A stretch of 59,465 bases of DNA, counting the filler, from Bipalium vagum (Eukaryota): assembly GCA_037834085.1 (NCBI GenBank). It is 3 parts of 3 records of this genome, joined end to end, with 100 filler letters (N's around TTAATTAATTAA, not from the genome) between each part and the next. Parts side by side here need not be neighbours in the genome. Positions count along the whole stretch, not along the records: positions 15,708 to 42,667 come from JBBMKC010112224.1; 2 more parts are not named here. One strand, written 5' to 3'. The notes beneath the pieces were generated by a model. It was not told the DNA's origin. It ran no database searches and saw only the letters and a list, made by a program, of their open reading frames with translations. Made by a program: the position numbers and the translations under genes. Positions 16,335-42,472 of this stretch are shown one piece after another. Each line of letters starts with the position of its first letter. Position 1 is the first letter of the stretch.

Positions 16335-16872
16335 TAACAGATCCCTAGACAGTGGGGTAGGACCTGATGACGCTGTGTACAGGAATGGATTTGTTTTCCA
16401 GAATGTAAGAAGTTCTAATTACGTATCTCCCTTTTCAACATTGGCATCCTCTAACAATTCGATCGGTCAAAACAATATCATTAATCGATATTGGCAGTCC
16501 TATCAGCCTGAATTCATACATTCACAAACCTCCGAAACTGATTCTAATAGAATGACCAGTAACGATAATTCCAACTTTAACGGTTCAATGCCTCCGGATT
16601 TTGTTCCATCGCCGAAGGAGTCCTGCGTGTCTTTAATACCGAACCCTGGAAATAACCAGTCATTTGTTTGTATACCAATCGAAGAATATCAGCAACATAT
16701 GCGCTTTCTTCTCGATTCTCAAGGTCCATCATCACTACGGTCATTTTCTATAGCGTCCGGTTCAACAAATAATGGAAATGTGATATTCAACCAAAATCAA
16801 CGGAACCAGAATGGAAACATCAGTCCCACCGATGTGTCTGTAAAATCCAATTCAACGAACTCAAAAGCGTAA
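16335..16872 (+). CDS. Terminal exon of an unidentified gene (Ser/Asn/Gln-rich, probably disordered)
   Basis: Acceptor ..catatag at 16334, ~178 open codons (NRSLDSGVGPDDAVYRNG...NSKA*), GC above background, AATAAA at ~17064. No resemblance to IFT81. Confidence 0.6.
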
Positions 16873-19849: not shown

Positions 19850-20051
19850 TCACACAAAACAAACAGGATAAATATTTGCGCCTAAGACACATTTTCCATC
19901 TTTACGGAAAAACTTTATTTGAAAGTCTGTTATTGGAAGCATATCCGGTTTATTTGTACTTAAGACCATCTTCGTAAACGTTCCAGGTACTTTATACTAA
20001 GATCAAAATAATATAATAAATCAAAATTCGTAGTAAATTTAAAAATATATA

Positions 20052-20112
<61 letters not shown>

Positions 20113-20508
20113 ATTGTTGTTGTTGTTATTTTTATTATTGTAATTATTATTAATTTTTATTTTTATTAATAACATTATTATTAAATTCATTCAAAGCTTT
20201 AACTAATTATTATTAAGTAAGGTGTCATTAAAAGTTAGCAATTTATAACAAAAATAATATTTATTTCATCTATTGATTTAACGGATAAAGATAATATTAA
20301 CTTTTTAAACACTTCAGGTGAAAAATTATTTGCTCATTGAGAAATGTAAATAAGTTTCTGATATTTTAAAGTCAATCATCTTGCAGTGGCAGAGGAAGTG
20401 CAAATAATAAATCAAAAGTATTACGTTAAAGTTAACTTTAAAAACGAAATTTTAGAATAACTAATAATAAATGTTAAACATTTAAAATAATAATAAAAAT
20501 AACAACAA

Positions 20509-20564
<56 letters not shown>

Positions 20565-23500
20565 TTACATTTATACAAGAAATAGTAATAAAATGATGAC
20601 AAGAAAGAAATCTTCAGAAAATTATAGTCTGGTTATTTCAAAATGAAAATTTAGATGAAACAGAAAAAACACAAGGCTCAATGTCAGAGAATCCTATGCT
20701 AAGAAGAATACATAAACGAGAGAATATACTGAGAATAGTAAAATTGTATTTTAAAAATTTGCAAAACTTTGCCTACTAGACGAATAGAAAATAATATGGA
20801 TAAATAAAATGTGTTTATAACGACGTCACTTTTTAATCCTTTGATAACTGACATTTTAATTTATCAATAAAATATATTTTTACAACATTTTAAAACAGGT
20901 TTAACTTAATTCAAAAATTCGAGCAATGAGGTTATTTGTGAAGCAAGACATCTGACAAATGAGTGCCTTGTCCGTACAAGCACAGGTTGACTCTTGTTAT
21001 GAAATTTTTTATGACATTTTGGCATTGGCTCTTGGAAATTTCAGTCATCAAGTTTTGCATTTCTTCTTTTAACTCATCAAGATTTAGGATTTGTTAACGT
21101 ATACCTTATCTTTAAGATAACCCCAAAGACAGGAGTCTGGGAGCGTCAAGTCACACGATCGTCCTGCATTTTCGAATTGTTTCTGCAAAACATGACCCAT
21201 TCTGATAATGAATTTTGACAATTTGTATGCGTTGTTGGATTGTATAATTTTGCATTTTGAAATATCAACATTTATAGATATTAAAACAAGTATATATACG
21301 ATGGTATTTTTGCAATAGAAATTATAGCCAATTTATAATGTTAGTCCTTTATGAATGACCCTATAAAATATATTTTTTTTAAAGAGAAAATCAAACTGGA
21401 ACATGAATAAAACAAACAAACCTGAAACTTGAACATATTTACATAAAATATTTGCTTTCAGTTCAAACTAACTTTACATTCGTCGTAGAGAATGGTAACG
21501 TTAAAAATGCTGTGGCCATTATCAAATAGATAAACTTTTTTATCCAAATATCCATATCCGGGACCGAGAGATTGTCCTTTTATTAAATCAATATGTCTGT
21601 CATCAAATGTTTGAAAGGCCGTTGTATAATTGAAATTCTCTTTATTGTTTAAGAGATATCCATATACAACACATTCTTCGCACAGAAATTCAATTTCCTG
21701 TTCGGCATATCCTGACTTAATCTGGAGAAACTTTAACTGACTCTCATGAGGGTAACCTTTTCCTATCTGTTACATGAGGTTTTAAAATATTCTCATATTA
21801 CATTATCTTACATCAGGAGGAAATAATGCCACCCCTTCAAGCCTTAGTTCACTTTGCCAAACCGTTTCTGGATCATAAGGCCTCAAATAAGTCAATAAAT
21901 CACCCTAAGCACGAAATTGATAAATATTAATAAATAAACAAAAAAATCTTTTAAATCAAAATAAATAAAAACGCACTTTATGCTATATTATAACTGAAAT
22001 AATTGAAAGTTTATTAAAATTATAACATGTCCACAGTTATTATTAACATTCTTTCTAAATTTCAGTGATCGTTACTCTATTTAATGTTGCTTTAGTGCAT
22101 TGTTCTGCAAACCTTATCAATTTGACATACTATCAGGTTGTGTTGTATGAAATTTGTAAAATGAAAAACAAAGTTTATTAATAAATTACAAATAAAAGAA
22201 ACTATGCTATTCATCAAATAGGCACCCATATTGTCTACACATTTTTGCCATTTAAGCGGCAGCTTGTTCATGCCGGTCATATAAAACCCTGGCGGGCGAG
22301 TGTCAAGGAATTCCTGGAAGGCCAATTTCATATCATCGTCAGATTTGAATTGTTTTCCACCGAAACAGTTGTCCAAATTGCGAAAGAAATAGTAATCAGT
22401 TGGAGCTATGTCTGGTGAGTATGGAGGATGATTAAGAAGTTCCAACTCCAACTCCTGTATTTTTGCCACACTCATGTGTGATTAGCATTATCCTGCAATA
22501 AAATAGGAATTGATCTATTGATTAATTTTTGCTGTTTTATTTTAATTTTTTTCACCATTTCGTCCAATAATTTACAGTACACTTCTGCTGTGATCGATGA
22601 GCCCTGTTGCAAGAATTCATAATGAATCACACCTGCACTACACCACCAAACACTCACCATCAGTTTCTTTTCATGAATATTACGCTATGGACTGTGTTTC
22701 GGTGGTTCATCTTTGTCCAACCACTGTGAAGAATGTTTGCAGTTGTCATATCTTATCCATTTTTCGTCACAAGTGACAATACGATTCAAAAGTAGATCAG
22801 ATTTTTATCCAGAAAGGAACATCAAACAGGCTTGCAAACGCTTTTCTTTTTGTTTTGCATTCAGTTGATGAGGAACCCATTTATCTAATTTTATCACCTT
22901 TCCTATTTGATTTATATGATCTAAAATAGTTTTTTTGGTGACACCAAACTTTACAGACAATTCCTGGGCACTCTGACATGGGTTAGACTCAATGATCATC
23001 TTTAATTTGTCGTTGCACACCTTTGATTCATGGTGGCTCATTTTGGAGGTTAAAATTATCCTTACGAAATTTTAAAAACCAATTGGAAACTGTTTGTTGT
23101 GCAGTTACACGAGTCCCAAATACTGCAATTATGTTTTCAGCTGTCTGCAATGCCGTTGTTTTGCGTAAAAACTCATATTTCATAATTACGCGTATTTCCG
23201 ATATATCCATTTTTAAAAAAAGATTAATTTAAACAATTGATTTATACTTTATCAGATTAAAATGATATTTTCAAACAAGACAGATATATAATTTACCAAC
23301 GCAAAAAATAGAAAGGTAAAATATCAAGCCGATATCAAATAAACAACAATTAAATTTGGCATTTTAATTACCTACAAATTTCATACTAGACAACCTGATA
23401 TAAGTCTGTTATGAAGTTAGCAATGCAAAACATGTGATTGTCATATCACTATTTGTTTAAATATTCATATATGTTATAACGTCATTGACATCATTTGAAA

Positions 23501-26500
23501 GATTAAGTTTTATGCTTTCAGTACATAAATTTTTTTCTAAATTAGAATTCACTTAGCCATATAATTAAACTATTTATTTTAAAATGGATGGTACAGATTG
23601 TTGCCTATTTTTTTACAAATACAGATTTTGTAATAACTCCAAGGAAGCTGCAGAAAACATCAACAAGACATTTAGACAAAGCACTGTGAAGGATCACAGA
23701 ATTAGATTTTGGTTTAGAATTTTAATGTGGTGATACAAAGCCTGAGAATAAAATTCACCGACATCGAGAAACTAAGTGGATAATAATAATATGAATACTT
23801 TGAAAATTCAGTCGCATAGATTCAAAGTTCAACAAAGATTTTAAAAACTTTTTGAAGATAGGAAAAACCTTAAGGTAGGGTGTCATGCTTATGTTAAAGA
23901 TAAAGTGTGACCATTGTGAATTCCATAGAATGAAATCATTGTTTTGCAAGTTAATCCAGGTTAAATAATGTAATATTTATTGAAGACAGTATCTGGGCTC
24001 CAAAAATCTCCATAAAAATATCAAATTAAAATATTTTCTCAATTTAAACAATAAAAATTAAAAATTACAATTTAAAAATATTTGAATAATAAAAATTCAT
24101 AGTATCATTTTAGGGAACTTCATTCAAAGTGAACTCACCGACTCAAAAGTAGACCTAATACAGGTCAAGAAAGGCTTTTTGGTAATGTGAGAATATTTCT
24201 GTTCACTTTTTCTGCAAATTCCCTGAAAGGAATCATTCGGCTGTCCTTCATTAGGATCCAGCCATACGTCACCTGTCAACGTTGTATTGTTCTTTAAGTC
24301 TTGGCAACTGTTCAGTGGCCATTTTGAGGACATTCCTCTGTTCAATCTATAATTTCTAATAGTTCTAAGAATATCATTCACTTTATTCGATGCATGAACT
24401 TTTATGGATGCCAAATTTATTAATTTTAGTTCCTCTAATTATATTTAACAATTTATCATAATCTATAACCAAAAATACCATTATATAGATCTAAGAGAGA
24501 CAAACTAAGATCTGAAAGGAAAGACTTGTTATAAATTTTAAGTGATACATTTCCTATGGAGCCAGTTGATCCCAATTCACCATTTTCACCATTTTCTCCG
24601 ATTTCACCTTTTATTCCTGTAATTGAAAACTAAATATAAATTAAAATTGAATATTTATAAACCTTTCTGACCACGTGGTCCCGTTTTGCCCCTTTCTCCA
24701 GTAAATCCTGGATCACCACGAGGCCCTTGAATACCCTTTGTTCCTTTAGGTCCAATATTTCCCTTGATTCCACTTGTACCAATTGTACCACTTAAAATAG
24801 ATCCTCGATCTCCAACTATTCCCTTTACACCATCTGAACCACTTTTTCCGGGACTCCCAACTTCACCTTTCATTCCTTTATCTCCTTTAAATCCACTTTC
24901 CCCAACCGAACCCTAAAAATTTATTATTTATTTATGATACAAAAAATGTAAACCATTTCTCCTTTATTTCCTTTCATTCCTGGTATTGAAGCAGGTTGAA
25001 CACCCTAGTTTAATATTTAGAAATAAGTAGTACAATAAAATATTATTGAACATGAAAAAATAAGCCAATGTTTAGATAAACTTATGAATAAAATAGTAAA
25101 TAGTAAAGGACATGGTCTTACTTTTTGACCTTCATTGCCAGGAAAGCCTATAATACCATCGCTTCCATTTATCCCTTTTAATCCCTTTTCACCAGTAATA
25201 CCAGTTATTCCTTTTTGTCCCTTGTCTCCTTTATCTCCAATTTCACCATCTTTTCCAGATTTCCCTTTAGGACCAGTATCACCAGGTGGACCTCGTAATC
25301 CTGGTAATCCTTTTAAACCGGGAAGACCAGTGACACCGTCATCTCCTTTAGATCCAGCTAATCCAGGAACACCCAATAACCCAGTCTCTCCCTTTTCACC
25401 TCTCATACCACTCGAACCCTTAATTCCTTTGTTTCCAATAGGTCCCTATTTAGCATATAAAAATGTTTCATATCGAAAATACTAACATCATCACCTTTTT
25501 CTCCAGGTGCACCAGGAATTCCTTTTGAACCCGGTTGCTTGATTAATTTTCCAGGTTTACCTTTCGCTCCTTTTACTCCTTTTAATCCTTTTTTACCGAT
25601 AACTCCTTGAAAACCTTTTAGTCCTTTTTGTCCAATTATTCCCATATCTCCTTTAACTCCGATTAAGCCTTTCATTCCTTTTAAACCTTTTTTGCCTAAA
25701 TTTCCTTGTGATCCTCGTATTCCTTGGGACCCAATTAATCCTTGATACCCAACAGACCCAGGTTGACCTTTATCTCCCATAATACCGTTTCTTCCTTTTA
25801 GTCCTTTTACTCCTAAATTACCTCTCAATCCCTATAAAATTACCGTTTAATGTTTTAATAATGTAAAATTACTTGGAAACCCGGTCTTCCTGTCAAACCT
25901 TTTCCTCCTTTTTGACCCTCTTTACCAGGATATCCTTGACCACCTTGCACTCCGTGTTCCCCATTAATTGCTATTCCGTTAATTCCTGGTGGCCCAATTG
26001 GTCCCCTTAAACCCTAAACTCAAATAATTTATGTGTTAATTATTAACATTACCATATCTCCTTTGCATCCCTTATCACCAGGAAATCCTTTATCACCACG
26101 ATCCCCTTTTTCGCCATGTCTACCCATAAGGCCTTGATATCCCTTTTCACCAGGTTCACCTTTTTCTCCCTTTTCACCTTCTACGAATATTTCCTTTTCT
26201 AAAAATCTGGGAAACTACAGAATCTTCAGAAAACATTTTATTAATGAAATTATGCTTAAAAATATATTTATTTCTCAGTTTATTTTATTAAATAAATAAA
26301 TTCAGAGAAGAGGACAAATAAAATAAATTGTAAATGTGTTTTTCTGCAAACAAGAGAAGCATTCTCAGTGAAATATTGAAATATTGATTTATAAAATAAT
26401 AAAAATAATAAATATAAAACGAATTAACAGAAAAAGGTCAATAGTGAATGTAACCTTTTAGTAAACAGATACGTCCTTCTAAAATATGTTTGGTGAGTTG

Positions 26501-29500
26501 TTTTATTTAAAATAATATTATAATCAATTAATAATAATTAAAAGTAATATTGAGACAAATATATTACACTAGTATGTGAAGTACTGCAATAATTTAACAA
26601 AACAATTATGTAAAAACCATTTATAAAATTAATAAAAATATGAAAGAAAAAAATTTCAAAAAGTCGGTATGAGTCTAAATGCAACCGAAATAAAACGGAT
26701 ACGCAAAGGGTGTAGTCTAACAAAGTCCACGTTCTAGAGTTTGTGTTAGAGAAATTTTACAAATGGTAAATGTATCATCGTAAGTGTATCTGAGATATAT
26801 GTGACGTACTGGGAGCTTGTTTTTAAATAGCTGTAATAAAGAAAATGTATTCATTTGTTTAAATAAACTATTTGAATGTATATTTTTTTGCCTGTTCAAA
26901 AATAATCTATAAATACAAATTCTGATATCTCTAACTATTTATTATTGTTATACTTTTTAGATGGCAGTTTATATACCAAATAAACAATTTTTGGGTTGGG
27001 ACTTACAGAGACAATTTTTGGGTTGGGACTTACAGAGACAATGCTCTATCAAAAGACGCTTTCAAAAGATGGTTTGTAAGTTTCGGAAAGGGAGAATTTC
27101 TGGTGGAAGATAAAAAGTGCCCATTATAAATGAAAGTACGTATCTGAAGATCAATGCCATGAAGCGTTGGCGGCTGAAAATCCGTGCCAAACTCAAACTG
27201 GTTTCGCTAAATCATGAAATCTTCAATTACACGAAGTCTAAAAGCCATCAGAAAGGTATAAAAAATAAGAAGATGGGTACCACACGAACTCAAGGTAGAA
27301 GACATGGTAGAATGTAAAGCCTAAAGTAAAATGTCACTTGCTCGACAAAAAACGAAAAGTTTCCGGTACTGAATTATTACGGGTGACGAAAAGTGGATTT
27401 ATTTCAAAAACCTTAAACTCAGAAAAACAATTGGCGATATCGGACAGTCCTCCAAAGCAACACCAAAGAGGAAGATCCATAGAAAAAAGGTTCTATTAAG
27501 TATCTGGTGGGACGAAAAGGATTCATCGTGAGTTGTTAAAGCAAGGTGAAACGGTTATAGGGGAATAGAACCGAGAAAAATTAATACTGATAAGCAAGTA
27601 TTTTTCTGTCGGATACTTTGAATATATCAGAATTTGTAAAAAAGTGCTTTTTTATTTGAAAAATCGTGTAGTTAAAATAATATTTTATTTTTAAATTTTA
27701 TTTGTCTAGAAATTATTTTGGAATTATAATTTATGGTACTAAAAATAAGGTAAAAAATCAAAAGTTGTTCTTAGAAATTCGAGTTTTTGTCTCTCTCTGT
27801 TAAAAAGATCAACTTATGAACAAATTCTTACAATAGTTGATGTCATTGACATTGATGGCATTGTAGATTCTTGTGAAAAAATGGTAGAAATTGGAATATC
27901 TGTGGACATTTTGACAAGTTTTGTAATGTTCGGAGTATCCACTTCTATTAGACAATTGAGTATAGAACAGTCGGTATTGACTGGGCTGTAACTTCTGATC
28001 ACGGGCTCAGAGATTTCTCCCTGATTTAAAAAATTACGTATATCACATCAAACAGAAGGATATATAAGAATATCACCAGAAATATAGGTCTATCTTCATT
28101 GTTATCAAAGAGGAAAAATTTCTTTAATTCTTTCCAATTGATAAAACCCTGGTTCTCCATTTCCTGACTGTTTTCACAGTTATGGACAATGATTATTCTT
28201 TGGTTGCTTATTACTATTCGAATGTAGTTCCATCTGAATTGATTTGGATGTACAAATTATCTTTTACTTCAATCAAGTGATACTTTAATTTTGATAACCG
28301 AAGCTTGGGAAATGGATATTCAATATCTTGTTGTGAATCTTTTACATTGACTATCAGAAGTCCATTGAAAATAATTTTCAGCTGAATTTCATTTGATTCC
28401 AACGAAAGGATCAAACCCTTAGATCTTGTTTCCGGTTTCAGATAAAATTCAATATGCAACCCTGTCTGGTGTTAATACACAATAGAAAGAAAATATAAAA
28501 ACCTTCATCAAATTCCGATTGTCCTAAGTTAATAGTTGAATGTGATGCTCCACCTAAAGACTCTTTATCTAGGTTGACTTTCAAGATCTCTATAAAGCGA
28601 TTTTCGCACATTTTATAACGAGCTTGCATATGATTTAACATTCCAGAATTTACAAGTTGCCCCCCACTTTCATATTGAGACTTATCCAACTGACTTTCAC
28701 CTCTAAAGCAATCATTAATGACACACTGGGCTTTCTTTATATCATTTTTCTCATTCAATGGTATGACCATTATTTCACTGACTTTCGTCTATAATAGAAA
28801 AGAAAGCCATAAGCAGTACATTTTCATATATCTTTACAATAAATACCTGATAGTTATTAAAAGATCGATCTTGAAACAAAATATGCAACCTATCAAAATT
28901 GGTCCACCCTGTAAACCCTTTATTGTGCAGCTTTTGAATTCTGCCACAGTTGATTCTAATTCCAATTTCTGTTGAAGAAATTTGAATACTAACCTTGTTC
29001 CATCTAATAATAATTATTATAATGAACATTAAGGTACATAAGAATATAATGATTTCTTGTTTTAGATTCTTCCTTAAATAATTCCAAGATCACTTCTTTA
29101 AAATAAACACCTTTGATATAATATTAGGAGTACCCATAAGTAATCAATTATTTAAGTGGAAAAAAAAGAATTTAAATACATTTAGTTCTATTTTTAAACT
29201 ATTATATAATATCCATCGTTGTCTAGGACATTTTGCCATCTTGTTGGTAGAGTTTCAATTCCCCGGTCATAAAATTCAGTATCCTTTGAGTATCAGTATC
29301 ACTTTAGAGTGAGGGGTGGTTTCGGAATGAATACGGCTAGCTGATTTGGAGAAAACCATTGCTTGCTGAGCTTGTTGTTGTACAAGACCCATTCTCGTTA
29401 CCAGTAACAATCCTTCTTAAAAACGGATCATTTCTTTGTCTGCACAAAAGAGATTTGCAAATTGTACGCAGTTAATCTTTATTAAACTCCAACAATAGAT

Positions 29501-32500
29501 GTGACACCGATATACCCAACCTGTAAACCTACCCTATTTCTTAAAGATGTCTTTGAACCGATGACCAAGTAGCTTGAAGAACTTTTGCTATTTCCTAGAT
29601 ACTCATTTTGGGATTCATTTCCATTAATGCTTTTAGAGCGTCTTTATCAAACCCTACCGAGCGTCCAGTTTGAGCGCTATCAGACAAGCCAAAATCACCA
29701 TTTGAAAATTTTCGAAATCAATGTTGGCACTTATTGACTTTTAATAGGTTTCCATACACATCACAAATCTTCCTTGTTACAACGGTTGCATTAACAACCG
29801 ATCGAAAATGAAACAGTATGCAATGAGTAAATGTTCCTCACTTGGTTGATTCTCCGCCATTTTATATCAGAATTATAAAAACGTTTGAATTTAATTATAA
29901 TCCATATTCAATGTCAATGGTTGTAATTTGACGTAATAAAACACGTGTTTATATATTCAGGCTCTGAGGTAGAATGAAGCATACACTGTATACTAAAAAT
30001 AATTGATTACTTATGGATACTCCTAATATTAATTTTGGCAGCTTTTATTAAATTAGTGAAATATTTTGATGAATAAATATATGAAACTATACGTATCGAA
30101 AATATAAACATAATTAAAAATTCGTAAAACTGTGATTATGAAGAATAGAGGAAATTATTGGGTATTTAATACATGTACTTCCTTAGTTGAAAATAATAAA
30201 TTACTTTTTCAGTTAAAATAAACTTCACTGATTATATTAAATTTCTGAAAGTAATACATTTACGGTTTGAAAATAACATAACTCGACTAATATCATGACA
30301 AGAATGTAACGAATAATTGCACAATAATAAACTAAGAAAATTCTATTAGAAGAAGGTTAGCACTATTCAAGACTTCTACAGTCAGAAGTCGATTAGCTTC
30401 CAGCGAACAACCTAAGTGGAATCTAAGGGATATTTACCATTAATACTTGTCAGATTGAATAAGCTTTATAATTTATTTTTATATATAAAGTAAGACTTTA
30501 TTCTGAGATTAAATAATACAAGAAATTTTCAAACAAAACTTATGAAAATTGATTTTCTGAAAGAATTCGGAAATTGTAATGACATAATAAGGAATGAAAA
30601 TGATCATAAAGATTTTTTTGGTATAAATATTTTTGATTTTTCTTATTTTCAAAAAATGAGCCATTTTATTAAAAATGTTACTTATATCAAAATTGAAGTG
30701 TACACAATTATTAAGTGCATTAATTAAATAATTATTAATATTATTAACACCGGTAATTTAGGTTTTCTATACTCTCAAAGAAGTTCGATTTAAAATTGCT
30801 ATTATTATAATGATAGAATTATATTTACCTTTTTCTTATCTAAAGTTTTCTGTTATTACCTATTATTATCATGACATAAGAAGTGTTCAAATAAAATCTT
30901 TATCTGTAATCATGCTTACCTGTCACTCTTCACTTTCAAGGGTCTCAGAGGTCGGAATTCAAAGTTGTAGTTTTGAAATATTTCCAGTTTTAAAACACAA
31001 TCTTTAATTAGTTCCAATGCCATATAACTCTCCAAATTAGAGGAAAATAAATATAAAATGGGCTGAAACTGTTCCCCCTCAACATCGATATAATGAGGAT
31101 TCAAATAAAATTCCAACAGGAAACCTAGATAAGGAAATTCGAGTTAAGGAAATAAGATTTAAATACAAAATAGATATCAATTTTTTATTTATTACATCTA
31201 TATATTACAACACTTGTGTGATAAGGTATGGTGGAAAGGATAAGAATCCTGTGATAAGTGTCTTTTAGTCATCATTATCTCAAATTTATAGTTACAAATT
31301 ACTTACCAAACTTGATCTATTATAAGACATCTGTTGATATAATTTTATTTTATTATTAATTATAATTAAACTATCAAAGATTTTTGATAGTTTAATAAAA
31401 TTTTTGTTCGAATTTTCGATTTTCAAAAACGTTCTTTTATTACCTTTATTTGGGTATCGGTTCACCCGTTAACAGTGTGAAATCAAAGATTTTATTATTA
31501 TCATTTATTTATTAAAATTGAAAATGTTTAGTTGGCTTTGTGACGGATATATTACAACAGAATATTAAAAATAATAACTTTTAAAGATAAGGACTGAATC
31601 ATTTTGTCTGTACGAATTACGGAAGAATTATTTCTTTTTGGAAGTGTTTTTTAATTTACTCTTTGAATTTTTAATTCTAATTCTCTAACTTCGATTGATG
31701 TTTTCTTTCTGGAACTTGACTTTTACATTTGATTATGTTTAAGTTGTCTTATTTCGATACCTAATTTTTGATATTTGGTTATGAAATATGCATTTATATG
31801 GTGATTAATTTATATTTTTTCTTACTACTTTTATATTTTATTTTAAAAACTTTTGCAGTTGAAATGGGAAGTTTTGCTTCACCCATCATACTCACCCGAC
31901 CTAGCGCTCTCAGATTATCATTTATTCCGGGGGCTGCAGAACTTCCTGAAAGACAAAGAGTGTAGGACTGATAAAGAATTGAAAACTGCAGTTGGAAATT
32001 TCTTTGCTAGCAAACCAATGGAATTTTACAAGAAAGGCATTCACGATCTAGCCCGTCGTTGGAAGGAAGTATTGGAGAACAACGGTGACTACATTATTGA
32101 CTGACATGGGACTTTTGATGAATTGTTTTATTGTATTTTTGTTATATTTTCAATGAAATAATTCATAATAAAAATAGTGCGAGAACTTTGTTTCCAACTT
32201 AATACATCTATTTTTAGTAGTTTATATATATACAGTTTGGTCCAACGAATTGTCCACCTGTTGAAAAATCCACAAAATCAACATATTTATATTTCGAGTA
32301 ATTAGAGATGGATAATTAAATAGTTTTTTAAATAAAACGTGTTTAAATAAGCTTAATTATTTATTTTAGTGGTATTTTGTGTGTGATAATTATTGTAATT
32401 ATGTATAAAATTTCTTTTTAATTTTAAAATATTAAAACAAATTTATAAAAATTATTTAACAAAAAAACTTTTTAAATTAGTACAATTATGAAAATTATTT

Positions 32501-35500
32501 TTATATTTTATAACCATATAATGTTATTAAAAAGAAAAGATAAATGTTTTGTTTTACGCTGGGTACTTTCTTTTACACATAATAAAATAAATTTATAATT
32601 TCATACATAAAATGAAATATTTAACAATGGATGTCAGTCTTTTTAACCACTTGAGCTCTGAGTGTTCAGAGAATTAGAGAAGCTGCTATTAATATATCAT
32701 CAAAATCATGCTTTATAATAGCATTTTGAAATCTTTTTAAATTCATAAATTAATTACTAAATAATCAGAAAGTGTTTGTTTTTTTAAGAAAGTTACTTTG
32801 GCTTTCTTTTAGGAAAAATGAAGGTAAATATTTTTAGTTATCGTTGTCAAGTGACGATGGATACTTTCATTTCAATCGAACTCTTTGTTACTCAATAGAT
32901 GTTCCAATGAGTGAAATAAGTAAAACTCTGAAGGAGCGAATATGGCTGATGTATTCTTACATTTCATAAAATATTTAATAGTTTTAACTGAAACTCCAAA
33001 CTTTTATGAGGTTTGAAGTTTTCATGATAATAAATATTTCCCTCTTTATTTCAACAATGATGACTTCTTTAATTGCACACATTTATTTGATTTCTTGTCA
33101 TGCATTTTAAGTTTCTTAACTAAAAATTATTTGAAATAATAAAAGATTACCAATAAATCAAACTCGGCATATCGATTGCTGCAAGGAATATTAAAATTAA
33201 TAAATATTGTTTTAAATTAAGTATAAATCAGGTTGTGTAGAAAATAATGTGGGCTTTTGAATATTAATCGACACAAGCTTTGAGTTAATGAAATAATTTT
33301 TATGTATTTAATTGAAAGGTAATTAAAATTTTTAGTATACTTTCTTACCAGTCTAAAGTGATTATATATTACTATACACAAATTTTAATTGACCATGACC
33401 TTTTCGTATTACCTAACGTACTATATAACACACCAAAAAATTATAAAAACCATTTTCTTTTATGAATAATTCTATAATTTTCAGAAATTGTTAATCTTCA
33501 GAAGACTTTCCAAAGTTTATTTTATAAAAAATGTATTTGTGCTTATGATGGATTATGGTCTCTTACAATTCTATTAGCGTAAAATAATAATTATGATGTT
33601 AATAATAATAATAATGATAATGATGTTAAAATAATGATAATAATAATAATAATAATAATGAGTCTTAATCTTTATTAATACCTTTAGAGTTCATATTGTT
33701 CTTGAGAGATATGGGCATAATCTGACTTCTTGAATGTTGGTTATATCTGGACAATACTAAAATATTATTTTTCCAGCATCTTATGAATTCATGATCAAAA
33801 TGCTGTAACTGATCGTCATTCAGAAAAAATGCAACATTGAGCTGATGGACTGCTTTCTCAGTCAATTCTAATGGGATGACTGTACTGTTAAAAAATCTAC
33901 TTTTGGTACAAAGCGATGTTGTGATCTAGAGAAGTCATTATTATGTGTATAAGGAAGATGCACTGATGTTTTATAAGATAAGGAAAATTATGAATATTGT
34001 TTATTAATTTTTTTAAAATAAATTTTTGTAGAATATAAATTTATAACTGTAATCGGAAAATATTAATGATGAGAAATATAATAATATTATTATTAAGGTG
34101 GACCATAAGTCCTTTCGTATTTTTATTCAAAAATTAACAACAAGGAAAAAATATTTATTAAGCCTCAAAATAAAGACCATTTGAATTAATATTTTGAATC
34201 CATCTATCGGCAAGTTGTCTTTGTCTTTGGAGCTGAAAAGGTTTTGGCACCCTTTTTCTACATCTAAATTTTTGAAACAATGCCCTCGCAGAAAATGTGC
34301 CATAGACCTGAAAAGATGATAATCTGATGGCGCGAGATCTGGACGGTAAGTTGGATGTGGTAAAGGTTTAAGGCATCCAATTCCTTTTTTTCCTTTATTT
34401 TCCTGGCAGGGTGCGGTTTGGCATTATCGTGCTGTAGTAGTATTCTCTTTCAATTGACCAATGCTGGATATTTTTCCTTTACATCCTATCCAATTATAAG
34501 CAGTAGAGGTCTGCGACAATGGCCACCTTGTTTTTAAGAAGTTCGAAGTAAATCACGACTTCAAAATTCCACAAGACACATAGTAATACTTTTTTAGAGA
34601 ACCGTTCTCTCTTTGTTACCTGTTTTGGCAATTGTTCGGAGTCAGGCCATTGATTGTGTCAGTTAGGGTTATCTAGATAGACCAATTTTTCATCTGAAGT
34701 AACAATTCGGTGTATAAAATGGGCATCAAAAACATTTGAAATCAGTTTTTGCCAGATCTCTATTTTTTTATTTGATTTTCTGTAAATTCTTGGGGAATTT
34801 GTCGACAGTAACTGTTTACCTTATCCATTGAATTAAGATGTCTAAGAACTGACGTCTTTGGAATACCGAGCTCGTCACACAATCTTCGAGTGCTGGTCGA
34901 TGGATTAGTTTCAACTGCGTTGCGTATACATCCGAAATCAGTGGTTATCGGCCTTCCGGGTCGTCCTTGATCTTGAAGCTCTTCCTGACTTTGATTAACT
35001 TTTTTGAACTAGTTTCGGGCCACACGAATTGAAACAAAATCCTCACCTGCAATTCAATACATTTATTCAACGATATTCAAGTCTTTTAATACCATCAGCA
35101 TAATATGATTTATCAAGGACTTCAAAATATGATTCAGTTTCACATTAAACCTCCATATTTGATCTGAATCGTTTTCCTACAAGAGAATTCTTCAAGTTTG
35201 GAAACAAGAAAAAATCACTGGGACCCAAATCTGGCGAGTACGCCGGATGAGGAAGCATATCATATCGACGTTCATGGAGTTTAGCTTGTGCAACTATTGA
35301 AGAATGAGCTGGTGCGTTGTCATGATGAAAAATAACCTTTTTTCTTGCTAGATGAGGACGTTTATTCTTGATCTCGTCATTCAACTTGCTCAATAATGAA
35401 GCATAATATACTCCTGTAATGGTTTTCCCTTTTTCTAGATAATCAATCAATATTATGCCTTTTGCATCCCAAAAAACGGTTGCCATGACTTTTCCTGCTG

Positions 35501-38500
35501 AAGGAACAACTTTTGCTTTCTTGGTGCACTTGAATCTGCTTCTACCCATTGCTTTGACTGTTGTTTTGTTTCTGGGGTATAATGGTGTACCCATGTTTCA
35601 TCAACAGTAACGAATCGCCGTAGAAATTCATTTGGATTCGACTGAAACATCTGTAAAGATTGAATTGACAGATTAATTCCTTGACGCTTTTGATCAATGG
35701 TTAGCAAACGCGGCACCCATTTTGCAGATAGTGTTTTCATATTTAAATGGTGATGTATAATGTATCGAATGCGTTCCTCTGAAATCTTCCCAATATCAGC
35801 AAGTTCATGAATCTTTATACGACGATCATCGAGAACTGCACTGTGAATCTTTCCAATAATTTCATCAGATGTTGCTGTGCATGGCCTTCAATTACAAAAT
35901 TAATTTTAAATAGTAAAACAAAAATACGAAAAGAGTTTTGAACCACCCCATTAATAATAATAAAAATATAAAAATAATAATAATATTGGCTAGTCTAAAA
36001 AGTTTCCGCCGATTTTGGTAAAATAAAAAATTTAGAAAAACAAAGTCGAATTGAAAATTTTATTAAATTACATAATTACCATTTTTTGGTAAAACAAAAA
36101 ATCCGTCACTGTAAAACTTTTTTGATTTATTGGTAAAAAACTGAAATAAGTTTTTCGCATAAGATGATAATCTGACGGTGATATATCAGGACTATATGGA
36201 GGATGCAACAAAATTTTCCAATCAAGATACCTCAATTTTTCTTGCGTCATGAAAGATACATGTGGTCTGGAGTTATCCTGGTGAAACACAACGCCTTTCC
36301 TATTGAATCATTTGGGACGCTTTCTTGCAATTTCCTGATGTACTCTTGTCAACTATTCACAGTAGATAACTTTTTTCATATTTTATTATCGTACTTGACC
36401 CATATTTCGTCACTAGTTATAAGACGTTTCAAAAATGGATCGATCATGTTTTTATTCAACAATGTTTGGCATATTGAAATTCGGTCTTTTAAATTCTTTC
36501 ATTTAAAGTATGTGATATCCATAAATCCTGTTTCTTTGTATATTCACATTTCTCCAAATGATTTAAAACTATTTGATGATGAATCCATAATTCCTGAGCT
36601 ATTTCGTGGCTGCTTATATTCCTGTCTTCTTCAATCTTCCTAATTATTTTATCGACTATTTTCACAGATTGGTCGGTCAGAACAAGGTGTGTCTTTGACA
36701 TCAAAATTTCCGGAACGAAACTTAGCGAACCATTCAAGGACTGTTCTATCCGAAATAGTATCCGCTCCATAAACAGCATTAATTTTTTTAGTTACCTGTG
36801 TAGCATTTTTACCTTTCAAGAAATAAAATGTCATTATGTATCGCATTTCTTCTTTATTTATATCCATTTCTAAAGATGAATAAAATTTTATTAATTAATC
36901 AAAATGCCTACTTTTGAAAGTTTTTTGAATGTCAGGATTATAATAAATTGTAAAATGATATATTAAAACAAAATCAATTTCAATCAAAGAACATTTTCAT
37001 CGTCTATTAACAAAATCGGCGAAGATTTTTAGACTACCCAATAATAATATGATTTAAGATAAAAAAATTATTATTTTCAACACAAATACTTAATTTAACT
37101 TTTTAATAATGATATAAAATAAAATGTCTCTTAAATATATTAAGTATAATAAATAATATTTCCAGATTTGTTTTAATTTTAAACTATTAAAGAAATCTTT
37201 TTCAAGTTCTGCTTACTTTTATCAAAGTTGATTCTGTTGACATATCCTTAACCGATTCAGTCGACTTTATCATTGCTCTTCCTCTAAATTTTGGACTTGA
37301 TGACAAAGGAGAAAGTGTAATTCCAGGTGTAGAAATGTTATCCGTTTCAGGGTCTTTGGAACGACCTTCTAAACAGTCAAGAATATTGCAATTCTCAATC
37401 TCGTCTTGCAATCTTGCAATTCGGACATCAGCTATAAGTCCCTGAAAATATTCATGAGTCTCAAAATTTATTTTATTTTACTTATGCTACTTATAAAATA
37501 TTACACAAACAAGTATTGATTAATATCCGACTATTTGTTACTTCACGGATGCTTCACTCTTATTGTTCTTTGATATTTATAAGCATAAAATTTCGGATGT
37601 TTTATTAAATTAAAATTTGTCATTAATTTTTAATTGGAACTTTGTTGATATGTAGCAAATTAAAGAGGTATTTTCATCTTTTATTATCAATTAAAACGTA
37701 AATATATTGATTGGAAATATAATATTTTTTATTTGTTCTCTATGGAATACTTATCAACAAAATCATGATATACATATTGTATGAATTCAAACTAAAACAC
37801 CGTGTATCCCAATCACGTTCTAAACATTAATACTTTATCGGAAGATGGTAGCATACGTACACATATATTATAAAAAACACAGATTTGATTTAAGAGGTTT
37901 CAAGGCGATAATATGAATATCTAAAACAAAGACCCTGGGAAGCCTGATCCCTCTTAAATAAAGCTAAATTGAATTCAGTTTTTGAAGAAGTTAATCAGAA
38001 ACAGTTATTCAATTTGCACAAGATCTCATTTTTCTAAATCTACCATTCCCACTCATCTAAAAGCTCTTCAAAAGGTTAAAAACTACATTTATGAGTTGAT
38101 CAATTTTTATATAATAATAAAACATGCAATGAAAGGGGATTATGTACAAATTTCGTCGATAGTAAGTGCACTGGTTGCATGCTGATGAAAAGTCAAAACG
38201 TGTATATAAGCCAAGAAGACAATTATAATTGTTTGGTGGTCTGTATCTTGATTAATCTATTATAAGTTCTCAAAAACTGAAGTCACTATTACTACAGAGT
38301 TGCAATTTCAGGGAAGTGATACCATGCACACAAAATTAAATCAATTGATGTATTTCTTTCCAAAAACATTTAATTGACCAAGGCACCATTAATAAGTTTT
38401 TCGCTTCCAGAATAAAAAAGGAATTATAATCTATTACCTCTTTGGCAAGAATATAATTAGAATAATATTATTTATACTTGGAAACAATTTTCATCTTGGA

Positions 38501-41500
38501 TACAGATCATTTGGAATAAATTGAATTCCCTCCATCTATACCATGCAGTGATCTCTAGTGAATGTTTCACTTCACAATCCATAACCAAAGTGATCGTCGT
38601 CATATTCATATATAAGTCAATTTTGTACCACCTACATCCATCAATTCAATTACAAACATAATTATATTCTCACCTTTTCTTTTCAAGCTTCGCCTCGTGA
38701 AACTCCACCATCTTCTCAACAGAATTCTCTTTTATTAATAAATAAATATATTTGTTCAGTCCAACTTTCATCGAATATTCTCCATTTGATGAATAAAATA
38801 ACAAGAATCTTGAGTCCGAGTCTGCTTTCGAATAAATATAAAATGACAAATGGAATCCTGAACGATATTATCATTATAATCATTCAACATTTTATTTCAA
38901 CCCTTTTCGTATTGACCATTATCAAAATTGACTTTCGATGGTTCCAAAGATACCTTCGTATTTATTTCGGTCATTGATAAAATTTCCACTACTTCCTTTC
39001 GACAAGTTGCATAATTCACATTCAATTGTTTCATCATGATATTGGAGATTAAATCTCCGTCTTCCAAAATATTGACATCGTCTGAATAACATTTATCCAT
39101 CGTACATAAATAATTTTCGATGTCTGTCAACCTTGACAACGGAAGCAATGAGAGTCCCGATATCGATCCCTTACAAAAATTATTTACAAATAAATAACCA
39201 TTGTTACAACATGTATTACCATGAAATATTCTCCATTGTCTTCGTCGTTGAGAAAATCTAAATTTTTGAAATTATTCCATAACACTTCTTTATCAATTGG
39301 AATTGATGAGATCTCTCCACAATTTATTCTCAAACTGATCTCAAACAACGATATCTGAATTTCAATTTTGTTCCACCTGAATTAAAATGAAAATATTTTA
39401 CAAGCCTCGAATCTTTCATACTTATTTAGCAGAACCTTCTGTTCCTCAAAATTCCATTCTTGGAACCTTCGTCCACTACTGAATTCCAGTTTGATAAAAC
39501 TCGACGACATCAACTGAATCTGTAGCACCCTTTCCCTGTTATTTGAATATAATCTTAATATCGATTCTCTTTTGTCTTCACTCGGGATGTGATCAGATAA
39601 TCGAATATAGAATGAAACAATGAAACCTTTCAACATTTGAAGTAAGAAATTATTTATATTATTCTAACCCTCGCTGCTTATGAATTTGTTATTCTTTACT
39701 TTTACAGATTGTAGAGGTTCAGGACGAGAATCATACCTTGATAAAATGATGATATTCTTTCCTGAAAATCGGAGCAAAGATGTTTTGAATGATTTCAAGA
39801 CATTGTCAGGAAGCTTTGAGACCAGATCGAAATATTTAAAGTTTCCATAATCTAATTCATTCTAAACATAAAGAAAATCTTAGTTTTAAAAAATATTATT
39901 TTACGGTTTAAATTGACAAATTTATTGAACCAAAGTATAGTGAAACTTTCATAAAAAGCATACCCAATATTCCAGACATAAGTTATCAAATTTTACTTTA
40001 TATCGGATGTGGCATAAATGCTTTAATTTGTTTATTCTGAAGTATTGTTGTTACACAATTACACGAATGACTAACAAAAAGTTCAATATCAATAATATTT
40101 ATTTCGTGAATAATATATAATGAAGTCTAGTTTTCCAAAGAAATGATCTGGAGTCTTTGAACTGATGTTGCAGTTATACGATTTTCAATTTTATGTGAAA
40201 CTTGAAAAAAAATCCTTTTTTTCTAAATGAAAAATTTTTTCTGTCATATGAATTTCGTAGTTTGAGCTATTTGTAGGGCTTCATTATTTTTCATTCAATC
40301 GTCGTTGGAATTATTATTAATATTACCTGGAATAATTTCCTTGAGCAATTTCTTTTTCTTAATCTCCCTTATCTAAAATGTCAGCAATAACATTAGCTAA
40401 CAATTCTTTCTCATTTTTTCATTTCAAAAGTAATAGATTTTCTTCAAAGACCAATGAATGTCAGTGAATGGTAACTCCTTCAACTATTAGTTCTTATATA
40501 CATGATCTTTTATCTTGTAGTTCAGGTTTAACACAAGTTTTCACAAATCTGTAATTATTGATAAATTTTTGCGGATTGTCTCTGGTTTAACCAATTTCCA
40601 CGATTTGAAAATAAATCGGATTGTATATAATATAAAGAATGATTTTACAATTCACTTAAATGTTTGTCCGAATCCATATCCGGAAAAAGAGATAATTCAT
40701 TGACTTTAACACTTCTGATAATGCCACTTCTACTGGTTGTACTTAGCTATTCAAGTTAGATAGTACCAATATCACCTGAATATGTGATAATTATCTAATT
40801 ATTTAAACAATTTGTTATTTAAAATATACATATTAAATGAAAAATTGATGTGATGGAGCAAAGTGACTTACATATTTGAAATCAGCATGAAAAAACGATT
40901 CAGAAATGCATAATAAAATCTAGACGGCAAAATGATGCAGACCAGTGTAATCGCGTCTATTGTATGAGCTGAACAATTATCCAAATATAATATTACGTTC
41001 TCATTTTGGAAAAGTTGATTAAGATTTGAAAGACATACATTGAGAATAAAAGTTGTCATCCAGTTTTTTCTTTAACTGCTTTCATATTCAAGACAAAAGA
41101 CCTTTATATCTATGCTTCTTAAACATCGAGCTAATTTTGAGTTGACTATTACTGATTTGCGTCAATTTTTATCCTTCTGGTGAACATAATAACAAAACTG
41201 TGATTATTTTCTCTTATTACACAATTCATTCTTTTTGTACTTAGTGTTTTATGGGTCAACATTTTCGAAAAATATATTTTTAATTCATAGTCTTCAACCA
41301 TAAAATTGACATTTTCTTTTCAATTTTGATATCTCCAATTGCAGACTCGATTGATATCGATATCTACTGAAATAATCTTGCTCTTTCAAAATTTTTACAG
41401 CTTGACAATTGAAAGCAATTTTGAAATTTGAAACTCTTACAACCCTTTAGCATTTTCTTGTAAAATTGATCCCGATTTTGCAAAAATCTTGACCTCTTGC

Positions 41501-42472
41501 TATTAAAAGCCATTGATACAATGTAATATTAAATTCCCTTTGCTTAAATATATACTTGTGCGGATGGACTTGATTGATAAAACCATTTTTTGTTTTATTT
41601 TAACTCTTGAACTGATCCTTTAATAACGTTCAATTCATCACGCTATTTCGCGGGTACTCAAGCCTTGTTCAAGATAATTTAATATTAACTGCTTGCCTTC
41701 CAGGTTAATCTTGTTTCTTCTTTTTTTTTATCGAATGTCTTAATTTATCTCTATTTTGCCATAAATAAAGAGAAATAAAACAAGAGTTAATAAACAAGAG
41801 TTAAACAAAACAAGAGTTAATGAACTCCATAAAATGAACTCCATAAAACAAGAGTTAATGAAAATATTTTAAAGAAATCTTAAAATATTATAAGTAGTTG
41901 AAAGTTATGAATATTATTATTTGATAGATGTGTTCCCATCAAAACAGTACTTAAATAAACATTTTTTTTCGAACTTCGTGCTATTATATAATTGATTTTC
42001 ATATATAGATAGGTTCATAGTTTTATTACACTAAAAAATTTTAAATTGTACCTTTTATTGAGATAAACTAAAGTGTATATACATCACTTTATATATATAT
42101 ATATATGCATTTTATACGGAGGTTTCACTCAATTTGTTTTAATTTTTTAGTAATGATATAAAAATGATATCTCTATTATCTAAAATCGTTTCTCCCGATT
42201 TGTTTTAATTTAAAACTTTAAAGGGATCTTGTTTTAATTCTACTTACTTTTATCAAAGTTGATTCTGTTGACATATCCTTAATCGATTCAGTCGACTTTA
42301 TCATTGCTCTTCCTCTAAATTTTGGACTTGATGACAAAGGAGAAAGTGTAATTCCAGGTGTAGAAATGATATCCATTTCAAGGTCTTTGGAACGAACTTC
42401 TAAACAGTCGAGAATATTGCAATTCTCAATCTCGTCTTGAAATCTTGCAATTCGTACATCAGCTATAAGTCC
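19850..42472 (-). CDS. Atypical fibrillar-type collagen: (TSPN/LamG-like)x>=4 + short triple helix + COLFI; 5'-truncated by gap
   Basis: 26 phase-compatible GT-AG exons (5268 nt): 42472-42248, 39861-39669, 39626-39422, 39376-39220, 39169-38902, 38857-38674, 38631-38478, 37441-37217, 33925-33682, 31124-30920, 29003-28847, 28788-28503, 28461-28284, 28233-28077, 28020-27832, 26214-26053, 26013-25873, 25831-25487, 25445-25122, 25004-24954, 24912-24663, 24616-24479, 24434-24139, 21904-21812, 21766-21473, 19996-19850. COLFI motifs: NSCQDL, WLDPNEG, QLKFLQ..Q.I.F.C, YDEC, LPITD, PVCFV*. TSPN-like motifs: WNKVSIQI..I.I.INC, WYKIDL..ITLVMDC, FQGLIADVRI. Confidence 0.85.
20054..20562. repeat. (ATT)n (20054-20110) and (AAT)n (20510-20562) microsatellites
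   Basis: Two direct trinucleotide runs in opposite orientation within the last collagen intron. Confidence 0.9.
20900..21200 (-). mobile_element. Tc1/mariner-superfamily relic (rosa/DD41D-like C-terminus)
   Basis: Minus frame RSCDLTLPDSCLWGYLKDKVY matches the RSPDLTPxDFxLWGYLKxKVY motif. Confidence 0.6.
22133..23398 (-). mobile_element. Full-length (1266 bp) mariner DD34D element with a frameshifted transposase
   Basis: TIRs TCAGGTTGTGTTGTATGAAATTTGTA / TACAAATTTCATACTAGACAACCTGA, TA on both sides. ATG at 23210. Motifs KWVPHQL, RIVTCDEKW, LLQDNA, HPPYSPDIAPTDYYFF. Split over at least 4 ORFs. Confidence 0.92.
23580..23900 (+). mobile_element. Mariner 5' relic
   Basis: Decayed N-terminus (..NSKEAAENINKTF..TV..RFWF). 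Confidence 0.45.
26960..27620 (+). mobile_element. Degenerate mariner relic with an internal 27-bp tandem duplication
   Basis: WVPHEL, IITGDEKWIYF and KKVLLSIWWD motifs. ACAATTTTTGGGTTGGGACTTACAGAG occurs twice at 26984-27037. Confidence 0.7.
29124..30026 (-). mobile_element. Internally deleted mariner (903 bp)
   Basis: Near-perfect TIRs TTAGGAGTACCCATAAGTAATCAATTATT / AATAATTGATTACTTATGGATACTCCTAA with TA TSD. ATG near 29860, IVTGNE and LPTRWQNVLDNDGYY retained, central catalytic part missing. Confidence 0.88.
31853..32203 (+). mobile_element. Mariner 3' fragment
   Basis: WEVLLHPSYSPDLALSDYHLFRGLQNFL..RWKEVLENNGDYIID*, followed by TIR GAACTTTGTTTCCAACTTAA-TA. Confidence 0.85.
33598..33660. 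repeat. Imperfect (AAT)n microsatellite
   Basis: AAT/GAT trinucleotide run. Confidence 0.8.
34091..35954 (-). mobile_element. Chimeric mariner: outer element enclosing a Himar1/irritans-like transposase fragment
   Basis: Outer imperfect TIRs (..GGTGGACCATAAGTCCTTTCGTATTTT / AAAATACGAAAAGAGTTTTGAACCACC..). Outer transposase 34150-35050 (RPGRP, RIVTSDE, HDNA, PDLAPSDYHLF). Inner fragment 35055-35888 (KWVPRLLT, RFVTVDETW, HHDNAPAH, PAYSPDLGPSDFFLF). Confidence 0.8.
35986..37041 (-). mobile_element. Mariner (mellifera-like), decayed with deletions
   Basis: TIRs TTGGCTAGTCTAAAAAGTTTCCGCCGATTTTG / CAAAATCGGCGAAGATTTTTAGACTACCCAA, TA TSD. ATG 36867 MDINKEEMRYIMTFYFLKGKNA. FHQDN and HPPYSPDISPSDYHL motifs. 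Confidence 0.9.
37790..38400 (+). mobile_element. Heavily decayed mariner relic
   Basis: Remnants such as SKSTIPTHLKAL, ADEK and IVWWS in the expected order. Confidence 0.45.
39938..42129 (-). mobile_element. Degenerate Tigger/pogo element
   Basis: Ends AGTGAAACTTTCATAAAA / TTTTATACGGAGGTTTCACT are approximate inverted repeats. Minus-strand motifs LYQWLL, WMTTFI, VILYLDNCSAH, SWKLVKPETIRK. Confidence 0.7.
41776..41860. repeat. Composite tandem repeat (AAACAAGAGTTAA x4 interleaved with TGAACTCCATAAAA x2)
   Basis: Read directly from the sequence. Lies in the 5' non-coding part of the Tigger relic. Confidence 0.85.

Follow-up and report, generated by a model that had tools for sequence, protein, structure and literature searches.

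We report the analysis of a 59,465-nucleotide stretch of DNA from Bipalium vagum (assembly GCA_037834085.1), here called the window, in which three parts of the genome are joined by filler. Positions 15708-42667 of the window, which are the whole of the 26,960-bp contig JBBMKC010112224.1 (GC 28.7%), are likely to carry a single large gene on the minus strand, encoding a secreted, COLFI-bearing procollagen chain in whose N-terminal region LamG/TSPN-like domains have multiplied into a tandem array.

The exon model was built from stop-free segments of the minus strand together with GT/AG borders and intron phase. It comprises 25 exons, all AG/GT-bordered, which join into a single open frame of approximately 1,690 codons (Table 1). 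Between 42472 and the point where the helix ends it is free of stops over 1,416 codons, and it runs for 276 codons more to a stop at 19850, in DNA whose base composition leads one to expect a stop about every 12 codons. The original prediction for this DNA had proposed that the short open reading frames upstream of the helix splice into one open frame, and the model bears this out; the predicted exon borders that we reconstructed are all AG/GT, and one of them, a donor that had been placed at 28479, correctly lies at 28503.

The head of the chain, as far as it lies on this contig, amounts to 986 amino acids against 418 for the helix and is thus, as had been predicted, more than twice as long. 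It consists of the tail of one module (T0) followed by an X and a Y module, which hold four complete repeats of approximately 200 amino acids (XA, XB, YA and YB), and a Ser/Thr-rich linker of 52 or 40 amino acids (29-35% Ser + Thr) follows every second repeat. Within each repeat the introns fall in phase 1 (in the Gly codon before Phe/Leu), phase 2 (before Trp) and phase 0 (before the last strand). Exon lengths also recur: exon E2 is of 205 nt in XA, YA and ZB, and exon E3 of 157 nt in XA, YA and YB, where ZB is one of two repeats, ZA and ZB, from a further contig, L014. The four patterned repeats, the recurrent phases and exon sizes (found again in the Z repeats) and the two-domain modules closed by a linker had all been described beforehand and stand in the model. 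The T0 linker exon, 42248-42472, had likewise been taken for the tail of another module, and rightly so; it had been supposed that the remainder was lost in a gap, but there is no gap beyond this exon, since the contig terminates at 42667 and the rest of the T0 module lies past its end. T0 differs from its copy at 37217-37441 at 8 of 225 nucleotides, a DNA divergence of 3.6%.

Comparison of the copies with one another provides a measure of coding constraint. In 19 alignments of paralogous module copies, mismatches amount to 6.9% in exons and 11.5% in introns, indel columns number 0 in 3,737 exon positions against 41 in 1,174 intron positions, and change at codon positions 1, 2 and 3 is 6.2, 4.7 and 10.0%, respectively. 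The scarcity of exon changes, the want of exon indels and the excess of change at the third position point to purifying selection on the modelled frame. The four repeats of the contig share only 20-30% identity and are therefore old duplicates rather than a simple repeat. When ZA and ZB are added, the six repeats align over approximately 200 amino acids; their identity is 14-30%, or 47% between XA and ZB, and they have a common motif skeleton.

There is good support, on sequence comparison, for regarding these repeats as LamG-like. As a reference we utilised 13 canonical LamG_2 domains of the same genome, each lying in a single open exon and each found by a genome-wide PF02210 search. Local hhalign of the spliced six-repeat alignment with these domains gives Prob 85.9, P 5e-6 and a score of 42.8 over a 66-column core, whereas of the 41 controls the reversed one scores 13.7, the 20 column shuffles 15.4 or less and the 20 block shuffles 18.1 or less. 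The alignment can be extended to 150 collinear columns, with the G-F-x-x-F-Y strand at one end and, at the other, the C-terminal F-x-G-x-I strand with its cysteine. All other searches used single exons, fragments of 50-100 amino acids, or exon profiles as queries. Among these, the E2 profile maps to LamG positions 35-72 (P 0.008) and the E3 profile to positions 81-98 (P 0.011), adjacent and in the correct order, and the Atlas leads for E2 all fall within the ConA-like/LamG clan, with scores below 0.9. It is the profile-profile match, far above its controls, and the collinear exon-wise maps that carry the LamG-like assignment.

Two results weigh against it. The Pfam check that had been proposed for the predicted exons, when applied to every exon piece, returned no LamG family, neither PF02210 nor PF13385, even at E <= 10, only a weak Pentaxin match, though with exons of 50-100 amino acids as queries the curated test has low power; and PF02210, searched across the genome, gives no match on this contig at E <= 1. 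As to subtype, the E3 profile has a sole match among 177,635 PDB sequences, the TSPN-type NC4 domain of collagen IX, at a weak E of 0.36-0.47, and PDB searches with E2 profiles and with one single E3 exon gave no match. TSPN is a reasonable but unproven label for the repeats on the strength of that one match. The 'TSPN/LamG-like' of the original prediction consequently divides, the LamG-like part being upheld (42.8 against at most 18.1) and the TSPN part not established.

The collagen helix and the COLFI domain are genuine. The Gly-X-Y helix lies directly upstream of COLFI and comprises 418 amino acids in 136 triplets with three small interruptions (6% Pro and 13% Lys), and Pfam Collagen is detected on single helix exons, at best with E 9.4e-21. 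Each of helix exons 2-5 opens in phase 0 on a complete Gly codon, a split Gly codon occurring solely at the last junction. The C-propeptide model is of 276 amino acids in four phase-0 exons, one of them tentative, with eight cysteines and the ending ...P-V-C-F-V; PF01410 scores 27.0 bits on its first exon, CP1 (cut-off 26.2), and E 0.0028 on its third, CP3. With both Pfam families detected, the predicted fibrillar type of the collagen is supported. The major helix of a prototypal fibrillar chain has approximately 338 uninterrupted triplets (PMC2852846), against 136 with three interruptions here, so the chain is fibrillar-type by its domains yet is no prototypal fibril-forming chain. At least 10 COLFI-bearing collagen genes are present in the genome, and the COLFI of this gene is the weakest-scoring among them (24.7 bits); its closest paralogue, on contig C29307, shares 43% identity across exon CP3 and has helix exons upstream on the same contig. 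The helix exons of other fibrillar collagens in the genome span at least 9 kb (for example on C207787), compared with 1.7 kb here.

That array and helix belong to one transcript, through the junction 27832 to 26214, we infer from their arrangement in the sequence: they lie on the same strand, the junction runs from phase 0 to phase 0 with a good acceptor at 26214, and the Y linker exon retains a consensus GTAAG donor at a position homologous to the internal donors of the X modules. Several points speak against the junction. A search for RNA runs holding this sequence found none, the sole run being the DNA source; a match of phase across the 1.6-kb intron is a one-in-three event by chance; this contig holds neither signal peptide nor 5' end; read through its donor, the Y linker exon comes to a stop after five codons and could be a terminal exon; and a scan of the intron for candidate first exons, on either side of 27672-27710, shows at 27305-27231 a Met followed by a hydrophobic stretch with a phase-0 donor. 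The lack of a linking RNA run, the early stop and the candidate exon would all suit two adjacent genes on the same strand, of which one would encode a secreted protein made up only of LamG-like repeats and mucin-like linkers, ending just past 27832, and the other a short-helix COLFI collagen with a minimal N-terminal region and its own promoter in the interval 27.8-26.2 kb; some invertebrate fibrillar collagens, such as Hydra Hcol-I, are indeed almost without an N-propeptide. We consider two genes unlikely, given that the donor of the Y linker has been kept and is matched in phase by the COL1 acceptor, that Met-hydrophobic strings like the one in the intron occur at a similar, chance density in unrelated AT-rich sequence elsewhere, and that the succession of LamG/TSPN head, linker, helix and COLFI is the established order of the clade B/C collagens (PMC2852846).

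The same candidate exon could serve one gene with two promoters, producing a long isoform with the LamG array and a short isoform that starts just upstream of the helix, for which the 1-alpha chain of sea urchins, where a long isoform is putative and the SURF modules are optional (PMC2852846), would be the model. No feature of the sequence specifically supports an internal promoter and we judge this arrangement very unlikely. The assembly is highly fragmented (440 Mb in 272,664 contigs) and one paralogous linker exon, on contig L007, has an in-frame stop, as might be found were the locus a decaying pseudogene or an assembly chimera of unrelated repeat and collagen sequences; with 25 exons free of stops and frameshifts, canonical splice sites throughout and clear purifying selection among the paralogous copies, such an origin is scarcely credible.

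The array probably extends beyond this contig. Further X-type exons, of 88-97% amino-acid identity, lie on other small contigs; among the X linker exons five are intact and mutually distinct (3.6-22% nucleotide divergence) and a sixth has an in-frame stop; the distinct XB-E3 exons number at least five, and X modules adjoin one another at three different junctions. Other contigs hold at least three more X modules, together with the divergent Z domain pair of L014, in which ZA is joined without a linker to the A-type domain ZB, with the same intron phases and exon sizes. A tentative signal-peptide-like exon is found just upstream of the Z domains (L014, 2635-2683), and the pair may lie near the 5' end of the gene. 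Were all these copies part of a single gene, its head would probably have roughly 13 or more domains, and the array of at least four to five domains originally predicted would be an undercount. Some of the extra X copies could be alleles, however; the evidence for their membership of the same gene consists of the junction types, and one of the linker copies is the stop-bearing one of L007. We looked for, and did not find, a paralogous copy with stop-free read-through of two exons, and the genome has no contig with both PF02210 and collagen matches that might serve as a single-TSPN collagen comparator. Genome-wide profile searches place the repeats on the X, Y and Z contigs alone, apart from one marginal match on C33519.

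Three of these sequences deserve separate mention. The stop-bearing copy, L007:3408-3632 (+), is an E4 + linker exon with 94% DNA identity to 42248-42472; the module may have decayed, or the copy may be an allele or reflect a sequencing error. A mosaic domain at L014:3-743 (-), with E1 and E2 33-41% identical to those of XA and E3 92% identical, suggests a gene-conversion or recombination boundary within the repeat. The marginal match, C33519:1478-1609 (+), is E2-like (E 0.023, 23.7 bits) and could be a very divergent further repeat or a chance resemblance.

If array and helix do form one gene, its expansion unit would be a seven-exon, phase-0-to-phase-0 module encoding two domains of approximately 200 amino acids (A and B) and a mucin-like, Ser/Thr-rich spacer, with the Y module adjoining the helix as an older, single-copy member and the X modules upstream of it. 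That the chain is secreted and trimerises, keeps its head and binds ligands is likewise an inference. The C-propeptide would select and register three chains and the helix would zip from C to N, its 136 triplets, if all of them folded, reaching approximately 120 nm. Such a trimer would be a short rod bearing three long beaded arms, in which LamG-like domains are separated by O-glycosylated spacers, and might work at collagen fibril surfaces or at the matrix-cell interface, as a multivalent binder or spacer. The retained TSPN propeptide of collagens V and XI, which limits fibril growth, offers an analogy for such a role. More tentatively, and with rather less confidence than we would place in an even chance, all X, Y and Z modules and the helix may form one chain of more than 3,000 residues, the trimer of which would carry approximately 40 LamG-like domains on mucin-spaced arms above the rod. 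Such a molecule would found a new collagen class, serving as multivalent adhesive of the matrix or organiser of the fibril surface rather than as fibril builder; it would have arisen by runaway duplication of a phase-symmetric two-domain module and be confined to one animal lineage.

No equivalent of the (LamG-like)n-helix-COLFI architecture was found in protein searches or in the literature on fibrillar collagens. Among the searches, the E3 profile has no match at E <= 0.001 in 1.84 billion representative proteins, a result of low power since the 52-position profile needs approximately 41 bits; a profile of the bridging exon, A6, and the COLFI exon CP3 found no homologue among 5.8 billion proteins, to which little weight attaches because the length filter excludes full-length proteins. 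The nearest relatives by design are the clade B/C collagens (V, XI, XXIV and XXVII, Nematostella NvCol7 and the four planarian colF genes), which have the order proposed here, of LamG/TSPN-type head, linker, helix and COLFI, helix exons that mostly open with an intact Gly codon and a C-propeptide of eight cysteines. Vertebrate, sea-anemone and planarian fibrillar collagens have single TSPN heads, as the original prediction had stated for clades B and C, with approximately 338 triplets in the clade B/C helix (PMC2852846, PMC12549020, PMC6453901), whereas here the contig alone carries at least four domains, with 13 or more probable in total, and the helix has 136 triplets and three breaks. Furthermore, the present gene, unlike those of clade B/C, is without a minor helix, possesses mucin-like spacers and has the most divergent COLFI of the 10 or more in its genome.

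In the literature searched, the sole repeated N-propeptide module described for fibrillar collagens is the sea-urchin SURF module, present in up to approximately 16 copies (PMC2852846). The SURF collagens (2-alpha, 5-alpha and a putative long 1-alpha) resemble our gene in having an N-propeptide expanded by tandem duplication of a cysteine-containing module on frame-compatible exons, but the SURF unit has four cysteines, is unrelated to LamG and sits between VWC and the minor helix, in chains whose major helix has the usual length. Collagen IX NC4 and the heads of the FACITs (PDB 2UUR) also place a LamG-type domain on a collagen, and the E3 match (E 0.36) falls on the W-x-K-I ... L-x-V-D/N-C strand; that match is weak and of 28 residues only, and the FACITs have one TSPN per chain and no COLFI. 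Laminin alpha LG1-5, agrin, perlecan and neurexin, which are multivalent binders of glycans or receptors, carry several LamG beta-sandwiches in a row, though with no collagen helix or COLFI attached and with the strong PF02210 scores that our repeats do not give. Hydra Hcol6, another invertebrate collagen, carries a globular domain in many copies (PMC12549020), but these are vWFA domains that interrupt the helix, in contrast to the N-terminal LamG array described here.

Table 1. Exons of the proposed collagen gene in 5' to 3' order of the gene, with the evidence for each (positions of the window).
Feature	Position	Strand	Evidence and remarks
T0: last-strand exon E4 + Ser/Thr-rich linker of an upstream X-type module	42248..42472	-	AG/GT, phase 0-0
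XA E1, N-terminal strands	39669..39861	-	AG/GT; enters phase 0, ends phase 1 within Gly codon
XA E2, 205 nt, from G-F-x-x-x-F-Y strand on	39422..39626	-	E2 profile to LamG 35-72; Atlas lead ConA-like/LamG clan
XA E3, 157 nt, W-x-K-I ... I-N-C strand	39220..39376	-	E3 profile to LamG 81-98; sole PDB match collagen IX NC4
XA E4 (last strand, C-x4-C) fused to XB E1	38902..39169	-	splice/phase model
XB E2	38674..38857	-	weak Pfam Pentaxin match, E 0.099
XB E3	38478..38631	-	splice/phase model
XB E4 + 52-aa Ser/Thr-rich linker	37217..37441	-	splice/phase model
YA E1	33682..33856	-	acceptor 33856 is the least certain border of the model
YA E2, 205 nt	30920..31124	-	splice/phase model
YA E3, 157 nt	28847..29003	-	splice/phase model
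YA E4 fused to YB E1	28503..28788	-	splice/phase model, donor 28503
YB E2	28284..28461	-	splice/phase model
YB E3, 157 nt	28077..28233	-	splice/phase model
YB E4 + 40-aa Ser/Thr-rich linker	27832..28020	-	ends phase 0, consensus GTAAGA donor
Helix exon 1: 12 non-collagenous residues, then Gly-X-Y	26053..26214	-	enters phase 0; Pfam Collagen 7.4e-09
Helix exon 2	25873..26013	-	splice/phase model
Helix exon 3	25487..25831	-	Pfam Collagen 1.2e-18
Helix exon 4, 324 nt = 6 x 54	25122..25445	-	Pfam Collagen 9.4e-21
Helix exon 5	24663..24912	-	splice/phase model
Helix exon 6, helix end	24549..24616	-	splice/phase model
C-propeptide exon 1 (CP1), COLFI N-terminal part	24139..24432	-	Pfam COLFI 27.0 bits, cut-off 26.2
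C-propeptide exon 2, tentative	21812..21904	-	placed by phase and spacing alone
C-propeptide exon 3 (CP3), COLFI middle part	21473..21766	-	Pfam COLFI positions 119-168, E 0.0028
Last exon: COLFI C-terminal end (...P-V-C-F-V) + stop codon	19850..19996	-	splice/phase model

The large introns contain fragments of Mos1/mariner-type transposons, at 34130-36894 (-), 22095-23228 (-) and 31853-32104 (+) (Pfam Transposase_1 5.9e-20, HTH_48 7.2e-19), and it is to these insertions that their unusual length is owed, the other introns of the gene being of 42-50 nt; mariner-like elements are also inserted in introns on L007 and L014, both of them paralogous contigs. The last intron holds long A/T-rich simple repeats, 19960-20640 (-), which translate as poly-Asn, poly-Ile or poly-Tyr according to frame. 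A Ser/Asn-rich open reading frame of 165 amino acids, 16375-16872 (+), lies on the plus strand downstream of the gene.

Elsewhere in the assembly there are several COX1-like sequences (C253947, C246471, C253320, C38971, C246095 and others), of which three are intact save for TGA codons, at 27-34% GC, and others are full of TAA/TAG stops. Mitochondrial COX1 reads TGA as a sense codon. As judged from these reading frames, the set suggests nuclear mitochondrial insertions and possibly the DNA of a second organism in the assembly.

Few animal proteins are as conservative as the fibrillar collagens. One N-propeptide module (VWC or TSPN) and approximately 338 triplets are the rule from sponges to humans, with SURF as the notable exception (PMC2852846), and a COLFI collagen with a helix at 40% of the usual length and a multiplied LamG-like head would represent a second, independent expansion of the N-propeptide. 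It would show that the cassette of C-propeptide and helix can be used as a stalk that trimerises a multivalent binding array. It would also provide a clean example of module amplification by phase-symmetric sets of exons, with copies ranging from 3.6% DNA divergence to approximately 20% amino-acid identity, as seen between repeat types, within a single gene.

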